A stretch of DNA of 64,000 bases from Podarcis erhardii (taxonomy: Eukaryota): assembly GCA_964252035.1 (NCBI GenBank), contig OZ176201.1; one strand, written 5' to 3'. This document shows positions 37,615 to 64,000 of the stretch, piece after piece (within the stretch, counting starts at the first letter, position 1; every line of letters starts with the position of its first letter). A program made the translations under genes and the position numbers. The notes under the pieces are model-generated. The model was not told the origin of the DNA. It saw nothing but the letters and a program-made list of their open reading frames with translations, and searched no databases.

Positions 37615-59198
<21,584 letters not shown>

Positions 59199-59358
59199 TG
59201 TGAAACACCCCTCCTGTAAGTACTGCTCAAAATAGGTTCCTTCCCCCAGCGAAAAAGCTGTTTATCCCCTTGAGTTGGTGGTACAGGACCTGCCGGCGCT
59301 GTGCACTTTCCCTGCCCTCTGGCCACTCTGACAGTCCTGATGCCCGCTGCTCTTAGTG

Positions 59359-59365
59359 ATTTATA
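59359..59365 (-). promoter_or_regulatory. TATA-like box upstream of the PCP2 first coding exon
   Basis: TATAAAT on the minus strand about 160 nt upstream of the ATG at 59198, with no intervening ATG. Confidence 0.45.
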
Positions 59366-61034
59366 CAGAACTACAGCAGCAAGCACCCCCTCGCCGGCTC
59401 AGTGCCACCCTCTCCCCCGCACAGCCTCACTCTCTCCACACAGGAGATCAAAATCCATATTTTAATAAACACAGGCGTCCAATCTGCTCCCTCCATCGGA
59501 TCCCCGTAATCTGCATAAAGATTATCCTGGATAATTGTCTCAAAAGAGCCAACACACACTTTGTTAGTGAGTGTGTGTGTGCTTATATGTTCCCATGTGT
59601 GTACATGCACATGTGTTGCACCACAAGGAAACTGAGGAAAGCACATGCCTTTCCTTCTCGCCACTTCATTTGTTTTGATCTGGCGTCATCCAGGCTGCTA
59701 GCACAGTCCTTGTTTCTCTTGCCCTAATCAAGCCACGATCCGACTTCTCGTGAGGTCCACTTTCAAGTCAGACATACTACACCTTTGAAATGATACGACA
59801 CTACTCATTTCAGGGCCTGGTAGCTGAGTCAGCTACAGGCCTTAGTCCTTGGCCAGCCACTGTGAATTCTGGCTCAAGCTGACTCACAGCCCTCTGGGGT
59901 GATGTGGGAGGTAAGACTTGGCCCAGTCAAGAATGCACTGCTACACATATGTGTGAACACCCTTCCTAGAGATATAAAAGGCCATTGCCGAGTCTTACAC
60001 TAATAAATGCTTGGCACAATAGTGACAGGTAGTGGCAGTGACTGGCCTGTACTAAGTAAGTAGCAATAAAGTGAATTAATCTCTAATTTGTTACTTCATT
60101 AACAGTTATCTGAGCATGGAATTTCCTTTCTTGCGCTCTTAGCTCACTCATATATTTAGCCCCACACATTAGAAATGAGGGAATTATTCTGACAGTGTTC
60201 TGCCACACCCCTATAGAAGTAAAAGGGTAATAGGAAACAGCCAATGTTCTCTTAGGTAAGCAGGATCTTTCAATCCTGTCTTTATACTTTCCTTTCTCAT
60301 AGTGGGACACGGGTATAAAATTGAACCACGTAGTGGATTTGGTGAGCCCTTATTTCTGGCCCATGGAATAAAAGCTGAAATATATGAGTTGTGGCCAAGA
60401 AGCTTGTGTTCTGGATGTGCTTGCTGCACGAAGCATATAAGTGTTTAAATTGTGGGAAGCCCTTTCTTGTGTAGAAGTTAAAGTTGGAAGATTGATGGTA
60501 GATGGGGATTGTCTGCAGCAGCTGTAAAGTTCTTAAGGGAAAAGGTGGGCTTTCATAGCAAAAAAGTATATGGGGGAAAGGGCTGGGAAAGTTGTTAGTC
60601 ATGAACTATTTACAGATGAGGGCTGGTGGAGAAAGCAGGTACACAGGCCAGCCCAGTCCACTGAGCCTAAATACATCTGCAGTATGAGGAAGAGCAGCTG
60701 AGTGTCAAAGGTTGACCTGGTCCAGCTGGTGCAGTTGGCCAGCTGTTGAGTTCAACAGGTGGCAAATGGATCTTTTGAAACACAGGGATGCCAAGGGATT
60801 TGTACAGCTTTGCAAGAGCAACTGTGGCCCTAACTTCTGCCTCCAGATTAAAGCAGAGCCATATTGTTACTCTAGGCAACTTGCCCAGCAAATGTTGGCA
60901 GCAGGGTCCAGAATAGGGTGCACAGGACTAGTAAGGTGAGTAGAAATTGACCCTGATGGTAAATACCAACAAACAGGGTAGCCTGATGAAGGACAGAGGA
61001 GAGACTTGGGGGCCGGGTCATGTCACTCACTCAC

Positions 61035-61558
61035 TGAATGAGGCATCTTGGTATTCTTGGTGCTGGTGTAGCGGGTGCTGGCATCATAGTCACCAAGAAA
61101 GGCACTAGGCAAGGCTTGGTATTGGCGGCCAGGCATGGACAGAGCCCTGAGAGAGCACAGGAAGAACTTCCGTGGACGCTTAACACTTCCAAGACTCTTC
61201 TTCTTCACCACCTACAAAAATGTCCAAGTCAAAGGATCAGATGGGGAAACATATGAGGGATATGCTGGTTTCCTTATCCGCTGCCCTCCTCCCCATACTT
61301 GCCAGTTTCTTTCCAAACCGATCGGCTTTCTCAGCCATTTGGATTCTCTGGTGATTGTCACACAGGTTGGCCAGGAATGGGCTTCTCAAGGCTTATGCTT
61401 TATGTTCCCCAAAAGGCCACTGAGACCAATTGTAAGCTTTTTCTCCAAATATATCCCAAGTTCAGCAGTAACCTCTTATATGAAAAACTCCCTACCTGGG
61501 CAGACATGTTCCCACTTTGATGATACGATGTTGCAGTGATGGTCTGGGATGCAATATG
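61035..61558 (-). CDS. Two unassigned candidate coding exons (61496-61558 and 61035-61211)
   Basis: Exon A: gtctaattatgtttctctctcag|63 nt|gtaggg. Exon B: gacatttttgtag|177 nt|gtgagt. Both lengths are multiples of 3 and open in the same frame: HIASQTITATSYHQSGNMSAQ|VVKKKSLGSVKRPRKFFLCSLRALSMPGRQYQALPSAFLGDYDASTRYTSTKNTKMPHS. The other two frames of exon B contain early stops. No homolog recognised. Confidence 0.45.
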
Positions 61559-62934
61559 CTGAGAGAGAAACATAATTAGACAATGTAGGCAGCAAGACAG
61601 GCCCCAACGAAAGTGTTGCTCTACCTCAGGACAAGAGCCTCCTGGACAGTCTGGGTCATCCCCATGGAGCTTGCTGAATTTTTTGTTTAGAAATATATAG
61701 TGTTAATTCAGATCAGTATAGCCGTATAGATCTTGATGTTTCATTTCAGGACATCATAACTGTATATAAATTAACTGGATAGTTATCAGGGCCTTTTCTG
61801 TGGTGGCATCTGTGAAAACACTTGCACAATCTTTTCACAGCATCCTGTGTTTGACATATCCTCTCTAGGACTGCTGGCTTTGAGAAAAACCATTAAAAAA
61901 ATCCAGTGAGCTTTTGGGTGATTTTATGGCACTGCATTTTAATAACAAGTTTATCTTCTGGTGTTGTTTTTAATGTTACTTAATGTTGTTGTCGTTTCAT
62001 CTTATTGTTTAATATATTTCTAATACCTTCTGCTGTTGTTTTGTTGTCACCCTGGGAGGGTGAACACCCAGGGGTTGCCAACTTTTTTGAACTTCAGGAC
62101 ACATTTATAATTTTGATAAAGGGATGTGGGTAGCAGTTGCAAAATAGCTGCCATGCAGCGTGTGGCATATTACAAAGTGGCTATTGTTGGGCATGACACA
62201 TCACAAAATGTCTGTCACATCTAAAAGAGCAGGAGGAGAGACACAACCAAAAATGGTGCAGAGGAGACTAATTAAAAAATGTTTGTAACATGGGTATGTA
62301 AACAGCCAAGCATATTCCAGAAACCTCCTTCACCACCAAAAAAAGTGAGTTTGTACTGAATTACCTAGACACTAGGGAGACTGAAGTACTTTGCCATGGT
62401 TTTTATACTTGATGTTCAACAAGCACTGTCAAATCACAGATCACATTTGTCGCAATGGACTGAAATCAGAGATCCAGCGCATCCCATGCCACAGATTTTT
62501 CAGTTCTTACTATTTTCTCATCTGCTCCAAACCACAATCAAATCTGAGTCCACACCTACAAATTTTATATGTCTATAGGTTTTTCGGGGGGGGGGGTGTC
62601 TCATGGCTGCACACCACAGATTTGGGTTGGTGCTAAAGAGCAACGTATCTGTAATTTAAATTTTTTAAAAGTTCATTGAGACGCATGTGTTCTGTGCCTG
62701 ATGCTGCTTTGGGGCATATCTTGTGTAAAGATCATGCTTGTGAAAGAGAAGTTTTCATGTGAAGCTATACTGCATGAATAGACTTCAGGTAAATTCAGGG
62801 CAGAGGGGGCACAGGGCTGCCTTCATTCTACTGAACACCCCCACCCCCCCACACCCTGGTCAACTGGTGAAAACGAAGGAGAAATCCTGAACCCAGTAAC
62901 ATACCACTTTCACAAGGAAGAAGAACAAAAATAT

Positions 62935-63315
62935 GGGGAAGGGCCATAGCTCACTGGCAGGCATCTACTTTGAGTGCAGCGGGAAGCGGGTGGTGCTAAA
63001 TAGGTACCGCTCCGGTGGGAAGGTAAACGGCGTTGTGCTGCTCTGGTTCACCAGAAGCGGCTTAGTCATGCTGGCCACATGACCCGGAAGCTGTACGCCG
63101 GCTCCCTCGGCCAATAAAGCAAGATGAGCGTCGCAACCCCAGAGTCGGTCACGACTGGACCTAATGGTCAGGGGTCCCTTTACCTTTTTACTTTGACTGC
63201 AGAAGGTCTCGGGTTCATTCCCTGGCACCTCCAGGTAAGGGATGGGAATGTCCTCAGTGTGAAACCACAGCCAAACAGCATAGTAGACAATACTGAGCCA
63301 AATATACCAATGGCT
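62935..63315 (+). mobile_element. tRNA-derived SINE (Squam3-like) split by the Sauria SINE insertion
   Basis: A-box-like GGGCCATAGCTCACTGGCAG before the insert; CAGAAGGTCTCGGGTTCATTCCCTGGCACCTCCAGGTA...GTAGACAATACTGAGC after it. Family name from recall. Confidence 0.65.
62974..63188 (+). mobile_element. Internally deleted Sauria SINE nested in another tRNA-derived SINE
   Basis: Short head GGGAAGCGGGTGGTGC joined directly to TAAATAGGTACCGC... and the intact 3' half. 8-bp TSD TACTTTGA at 62966-62973 and 63189-63196. Confidence 0.85.
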
Positions 63316-64000
63316 GGAGCTGGTACAAGGCAACTTCTAACAGTCCTGAGTGAGGCATGCCCCAGAGATTCCAGCGACCCTTTTAAAGAAAAAGTGACCA
63401 TTGGGGGGCAAGCAAGCACTCAGGCTATGTGGAGGCAAGCCAGTGGGTGGGAATCCACCCTGCCATCTCCAGCACCCCCTTTCTAAAATGTGAACAAACA
63501 ACTGTCCGCTCTGGAACAGGAGAAGCAGCTTCAGTGATGGCAGCCAAGTGAAGGGGGTCCCCCCTTTCCCCTGGCACTGCCTCAAGCGTAAACAAAGAAC
63601 TAAACCCCCTTCTTCAGGGTTGTTGGTTTTTTTTAAGTCCCTTCAGGCAGGCCCAAAACAACACTTTGGGCAAATGCTCAGTACTGCAGCTGCTGGCATG
63701 AGGTGGGCCTCACAAGTTCTGACATCGTCCCCTCAAACCTCTATGTACCACGGTCACCATGGCTTGCTTACCAAAGCCTAGTGGTGCCTCTTCTCCAAGT
63801 GAAGTCTCTGTTGCATCGAGACAAGAGGGGAGGCATCCAATCACAGCCACGACCCACTATTCCCGGCATCCAATCAAAACTGAGTATTGCAAATGGGCGT
63901 GCTCAGGCCCACTCTAGGCCTAGCCAAAGAGACATACACCAAAGAGAATTGAAGTAGGCACTGCAGTAGGGCTTGGTGGGGGCACTGGTGCCCATGGGCA

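Follow-up and report, generated by a model that had tools for sequence, protein, structure and literature searches.

Exons A and B upstream of PCP2 in Podarcis erhardii: very probable distal alternative first coding exons with a basic N-terminal peptide

Alternative N-termini of PCP2 in mouse, turtles and squamates

The mouse Pcp2/L7 gene uses alternative 5' exons, 1A and 1B, and has a retina-specific variant, Ret-PCP2 (PMC3939015), which agrees with the alternative first exons and the retinal variant that the earlier note on this DNA gives for the mouse. Exon 1B of the mouse gene is said to bring a second GoLoco motif (PMC3939015). Two mutually exclusive N-termini are found in turtles and in other squamates, namely isoforms X1/X3 versus X2 in Pelodiscus sinensis, X1/X2 versus X3 in Pogona vitticeps and X1/X2 versus X3 in Hemicordylus capensis. 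One form is basic and follows the pattern MSAQ/RRPR...LCSLRAL...YQxLP...FLxD...RY, the other is acidic, and both are joined to the same exon 2. Our literature search found no paper on a basic PCP2 N-terminus in non-mammals.

We analyzed a stretch of 64,000 nucleotides from P. erhardii (hereafter, the window), in which two small exons, A and B, lie upstream of PCP2 (L7/GPSM4) on the same strand (Table 1). These exons are very probably distal alternative first coding exons of PCP2, joined to each other and then in phase 0 to exon 2, with the proximal first exon skipped. The locus is similar to mouse Pcp2/L7 in that alternative 5' exons of the same gene alter the N-terminus before the conserved GoLoco core, and similar to the turtles and the other squamates in having both a basic and an acidic form placed onto exon 2. 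Unlike mouse exon 1B, exon B of the window gave no GoLoco match in Pfam, and no similarity between placental PCP2 peptides and exon B could be detected. In placentals, the acidic MDQEEK... form resembles the reptile proximal exon.

Table 1. Coordinates of PCP2 features in the window
Feature	Position	Strand	Details
Candidate upstream 5' exon	62905..62964	minus	donor GTG/gtatgt; ORF piece MPASELWPFPIFLFFFLVKV; matched by RefSeq X1 N-terminal extensions
Exon A	61496..61558	minus	63 nt, last 12 nt coding; A-B joint found in 4 runs
Exon A, 5'UTR	61508-61558	minus	
Exon A, start codon	61505-61507	minus	A at -3
Exon A, CDS	61496-61507	minus	12 nt, encodes MSAQ
Intron between exons A and B	61212..61495	minus	284 nt, GT..AG; spliced out in contigs of 4 runs
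Exon B	61035..61211	minus	177 nt, 59 codons; very probably codes for the basic N-terminus of PCP2
Proximal alternative first exon of PCP2	59082..59391	minus	CDS 59082-59198; contig 17 of run X3; homologous to Pelodiscus isoform X2 (P0014)
PCP2 exon 2	50801..50924	minus	first GoLoco motif; putative phase-0 splice target of exon B
PCP2 exon 3	49057..49220	minus	second GoLoco motif

The PCP2 gene and its transcripts in the window

Exon A is flanked in the window sequence by the acceptor tctctctcag/CAT and the donor CAG/gtaggg, and exon B by the acceptor tttttgtag/GTG and the donor TCA/gtgagt. Both exons are of phase 0-0 and share a common frame; no stop occurs among the 59 codons of exon B, and none occurs in frame from the ATG of exon A through exon B into exon 2. 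The prediction of the two exons from raw sequence in the earlier note proved base-accurate in its coordinates, splice motifs, ATG and translation. A Pfam search of exons A and B matched no family, and an Rfam search over window positions 56000-64000 gave no match.

A search of sequencing runs with an 801-base query gave eleven small runs (X1-X11) from four related organisms, each holding a small share of the query. These runs were only guessed to be RNA, and the spliced contigs argue in favor of this. The contigs of X1, X2, X3 and X7, one run per organism, were placed on window positions 58100-64000. The A-B joint, at 61209->61494 or equally at 61211/61496 with a minus-strand GT..AG intron, was found at the predicted sites in one contig in each of the four runs, and thus in all four organisms. 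The exon-B pieces of the contigs in X1, X2 and X7 (61035-61209) had an edge exactly at the predicted donor, 61035. The contigs of X1 and X2 also carried G>A at 61102, the A-to-V change that is present in the P. muralis, Lacerta and Zootoca proteins. Contigs X2-9 (696 nt) and X7-25 (686 nt) contained 453 and 444 letters 3' of exon B, respectively, none of which could be placed on 58100-61034, and these transcripts therefore skip the proximal PCP2 exon 1. The proximal exon itself was covered by the X3 contig, in which 299 further letters were spliced on downstream at 59082. The proximal exon and exons A and B were mutually exclusive in the contigs seen, and three of the four runs held A-B contigs without any exon-1 contig, although contigs indicate presence only and do not rank the two forms.

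A transposable-element origin of exon B, a possibility raised in the earlier note, was rejected. Exons A and B are single-copy within the 64-kb window, and they were covered by one contig per run, as against a far greater depth on the short interspersed element (SINE) at 62997-63187. This element and another at 49380-49750 are Sauria-type SINE copies on the minus strand (ggtaaagggacccctgaccattaggtcc...). The contig depth on the former reached about 274,000 in the four runs, with hundreds of variant contigs, which indicates that this repeat is expressed and very abundant in the lizards concerned. A second high-copy repeat lies in PCP2 intron 1 at 58100-58296, with a depth of 111-1176 in the four runs and loose ends that read ...ACTACAACTCCCATCATCCC....

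The same N-terminus was examined in protein databases. A HMMER search with the 59-residue exon-B peptide against 1.84 billion proteins gave seven real matches, all of them reptile PCP2 proteins or read-through models. Three of the seven fuse the peptide straight to the first GoLoco exon (Laticauda, P0003; Chrysemys, P0006; Pelodiscus isoform X1, P0007), and the other four are read-through models. A word-index protein search with exon B alone yielded no candidate among eligible proteins of 32-103 aa, a length limit that makes this outcome uninformative. In further word searches, annotated PCP2 isoforms with this N-terminus came up for Ahaetulla, Liasis, Pantherophis, Crotalus, Pogona, Hemicordylus, Platysternon and Carettochelys, and the homologues start with MSAQ, MSTQ or MSGASQ. 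One of these proteins is misnamed, the Platysternon megacephalum "40S ribosomal protein S12" (P0038) being a PCP2 long isoform; similarly, "Purkinje cell protein 2 homolog" has been clipped to "cell 2 homolog" in the product name of the Podarcis lilfordi protein. Among the 120 of 153 matches that were listed, none was a PCP2 of a bird or crocodilian. The chicken assembly is reported to lack PCP2, a GC-rich gene (PMC6792250), and the lack of a bird PCP2 among the matches listed fits this absence.

The five lacertid PCP2 proteins, from Podarcis lilfordi (CAI5766290.1, P0152), Podarcis muralis (XP_028573090.1, P0157), Podarcis raffonei (XP_053232255.1, P0149), Lacerta agilis (XP_032995544.1, P0153) and Zootoca vivipara (XP_034960682.1, P0156), all read MSAQ, then VVKKKSLG...MPHS, then GoLoco exon 2. 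In this comparison the database proteins took the place of a spliced model, and the exons of the window were searched one by one. No residue of the P. lilfordi protein differed from the window (100% identity) in exon B (61211-61035), in exon 2 (50924-50802) or in exon 3 (to 49057); its residues 5-63 correspond to exon B and residues 64-104 to exon 2, directly after the exon-B peptide. The lacertid annotation thus has the same exon chain as the window (exon A with MSAQ, the 59-residue exon B, and GoLoco exons 2 and 3), with no difference of substance. To judge from the sequences of the annotated orthologues, B is joined to exon 2 in these proteins, and the RefSeq models of lacertids, Pogona, Hemicordylus, snakes and turtles all make this join directly. 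There are strong grounds, in these orthologous proteins and in the contigs that skip 58100-61034, for expecting the same B-to-exon-2 junction in the genome of P. erhardii.

These data bear out the earlier note where it proposed a long PCP2 isoform that starts at the exon A ATG and passes from B into exon 2 by phase 0, since the Podarcis, Lacerta and Zootoca proteins match this form and the contigs skip exon 1. The same note had described the exons as orphan or unrecognized, which does not hold: the annotated PCP2 models of lacertids, other squamates and turtles already include both, and one of these proteins is the one identical to the window. It had also described the basic peptide as an addition to the N-terminus of PCP2, and the peptide instead replaces the acidic N-terminus from exon 1. 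In the proposed mechanism, transcription would start upstream of exon A, A would be spliced to B with the proximal first exon skipped, exon B would join exon 2 (at 50924) in phase 0, and translation would begin at the exon A ATG (61507). The product would carry a 63-residue basic, disordered N-terminus (MSAQ plus 59 residues) before two GoLoco motifs, in the place of the 39-residue acidic N-terminus from the proximal exon.

The GoLoco core of the gene was identified by Pfam (PF02188; curated cut-off, 25.1 bits) at 40.7 bits in exon 2 and 44 bits in exon 3, and the P. lilfordi protein scored 75.5 bits in two stretches. The low-complexity acidic stretch of the proximal exon differs in length among lizards, the N-terminus being 39 residues long here and shorter or longer elsewhere, and a contig of organism C has a 12-nt in-frame insertion (GCTGCCTCTGGC, plus strand) at 59106 in its Ala/Pro/Glu-rich repeat. 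A candidate third alternative first coding exon at 55828-55905 (minus), which would join exon 2, is an 88% match to P. muralis isoform X1 (XP_077780478.1, P0051). At the 3' side, the alternative C-terminal exon of Zootoca isoform X2 is present at 47176-47217 (minus), with an in-frame stop, and a distal last exon at 37618-37806 (minus, ending ...STSS and a stop) matches the long PCP2 isoforms of Hemicordylus (75%) and of Pogona (70%) at their C-termini; the 160-aa lacertid models end in ...ATKK and not in this exon. With the distal last exon included, PCP2 therefore covers about 24 kb or more, from 61558 to at least 37618. This span contains a (GAT)n microsatellite of about 15 units in intron 1 (56500-56545, minus) and a run of N at 45919-46080.

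Some RefSeq X1 models extend the ORF further upstream, through exon A and into repeat-derived exons that are specific to the species. The extension reads MPAIELWP... in L. agilis and P. raffonei, corresponding to window positions 62964-62905, and MGLSIKSWLK in Zootoca. In tblastn, the window segment was 80% identical to residues 1-20 of P. raffonei X1 (P0155) and 70% identical to residues 1-20 of L. agilis X1 (P0039). It sits in tRNA-like, SINE-derived sequence and adjoins the SINE-like repeat of high copy number at 62997-63187. None of the contigs placed from the four runs showed a junction to this candidate exon, and the Zootoca exon had no match within 61559-64000. Because the extensions disagree between species and the window copy is repeat-derived, they are read as 5'UTR or upstream ORFs, and are probably annotation artifacts of a 5'UTR exon.

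Conservation and motifs of the basic N-terminus

A 1.6-kb contig of a different lizard (L001; Logan SRR31508491) served as a reference for the window. Exon B was 88% identical to this reference, with no gaps, and the identity was 47.5% with 60 gap columns in the intron between A and B and 43.5% with 18 gap columns in the downstream intron; the flanking introns were 44-57% identical, with indels. The last 14 nt of exon A, from the ATG to the donor, were identical at 14 of 14 positions without gaps, and the rest of the exon was 57% identical and contained a 5-nt frame-breaking indel. The low identity and the indel before the ATG indicate that exon A upstream of the ATG is 5'UTR and that translation starts from MSAQ, the start that nearly all homologues share. 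Frame-breaking indels in close relatives had been singled out in the earlier note, and exon B was indel-free against L001. Exon B is under coding constraint, with a dN/dS of about 0.46 (8 synonymous and 13 non-synonymous differences in 59 codons).

The identity of the exon-B peptide was 65-100% among squamates. A profile of the N-terminus built from squamates and turtles only was scored on the N-terminal parts of all collected PCP2 proteins. Isoform X3 of the salamander Pleurodeles waltl scored 28.8 bits (best of 1000 shuffles, 6.6), followed by the marsupials wombat (23.5; shuffles, 9.6), Sminthopsis (22.5; 7.5) and Dromiciops (20.8; 8.2), and by platypus (10.4; 5.1). None of the placental N-termini among the matches listed scored against the profile. 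The conserved skeleton reads RP(R)..L(C)xLRAL..Y.xLP..[FC]LxD..[RQ]Y, and residues P17, Y35, P39, D45 and Y52 are invariant in a 17-row alignment from which platypus was left out. The acidic MTTVE... form on the same exon 2 is also kept in salamander, turtles and squamates. On these sequence comparisons, the basic N-terminus is older than the split of the amniotes, and placentals seem to lack it.

The RALSMP site, a 14-3-3 mode-1 pattern (R-x-x-pS-x-P), was shared by the window and every squamate seen. The turtle peptides differ from the window, with an identity of only 48% over the exon-B peptide and with A or T for the serine of this site, which reads RALTLT, RVLALP or RTLALW, the proline being T or W in two of these. 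The site is RALSHL or HAISRL in marsupials and LSALYH in salamander. The serine and proline are not conserved in turtles, marsupials and salamander, so that the sequences give no support to a 14-3-3 site common to all species. The polybasic stretch, a putative membrane-targeting or nuclear-localization cluster, keeps its basic character, with KKK..KRPRK in the window, KRSRPGGPRRPRG in the turtles and, in the marsupials, RPRGRGLRG. In its core, however, Lacerta agilis and some snakes have KCPQK where the window has KRPRK, and the proline alone is invariant. Exon B was also considered as a cryptic GoLoco motif and this was rejected, only the FF of KFFLCSL being similar and LL or FL standing there in other species. 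An AlphaFold2 model of the 160-aa long isoform, made with the 17-row alignment, had a mean pLDDT of 55, a pTM of 0.14 and two short helices, and showed no fold, as expected for PCP2; the 63-residue basic N-terminus is predicted to be disordered.

Competing readings and the meaning of two N-termini

Three other readings of exons A and B were weighed against the direct join to exon 2. The exons might also, or mainly, be spliced to the acceptor at 59213 inside the proximal exon, giving a tripartite N-terminus of basic peptide, EGCFT, MTTVEAK... and exon 2. The 15 nt at 59213-59199 that encode EGCFT are indeed open and in frame with the exon-1 ATG, and in two ab initio models, a hypothetical protein of Lerista edwardsae (P0043), where the join follows ...MPHS, and one of Varanus (P0044), exon B continues into the exon-1 region. 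The X1 contig, moreover, ends 3 nt past exon B, as unitigs do at a branch, and this end could reflect alternative downstream junctions. Against these points stand the roughly 450 nt past exon B in X2-9 and X7-25, which bypass exon 1, the direct join in the RefSeq models, and the status of P0043 as an unnamed model, and we consider this splicing improbable. The alternative in the earlier note, in which A and B belong to a small gene of their own that lies upstream of PCP2 and ends in an exon with an acceptor near 60810 or 60530, is hardly credible: the AG acceptor-like sites are the only point in its favor, none of the four runs had any contig depth over 59479-60857 although A and B were covered, and each homologous protein found was PCP2.

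It is also conceivable that A and B are transcribed as 5'UTR exons only and that the MSAQ-basic peptide contributes nothing to protein function. No Pfam domain is known in the peptide, which is predicted to be disordered, and the dN/dS against L001 is only moderately low for 59 codons. Such a reading does not readily account for a frame that stays open from the ATG into exon 2, for an ATG context fully identical to L001 next to a 5'UTR with 57% identity and an indel, for an indel-free exon B, or for a peptide that is recognizable from salamander to marsupials with five invariant residues, and we regard it as very unlikely. The direct join of exons A and B to exon 2 is thus retained as by far the best explanation of the locus.

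Since exons A and B are already in public PCP2 models, the gain for gene discovery is little. The PCP2 model of the window has at least two alternative first coding exons, distal basic and proximal acidic, and the two N-terminal forms most likely arise from two promoters; the two N-termini may differ in function. To our knowledge, placentals are the only animals in which the function of PCP2 has been studied. The one point of mild novelty concerns the age of the basic N-terminus, which is an old tetrapod feature and was not seen in placentals. We suggest, tentatively and with somewhat more doubt than belief, that the exon-B peptide is of ancient origin and serves tetrapods at large as an alternative N-terminus of PCP2, with examples in salamander, turtles, squamates, marsupials and, weakly, in platypus. 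On this view, functional work on mouse L7/Pcp2 has missed the peptide, which could not be detected in the placental proteins seen, and it gives the GoLoco protein a distinct localization or regulation. If this is true, its effect in cells where the distal promoter is active may come, for example, from phosphorylation by basophilic kinases or from a basic signal for targeting.
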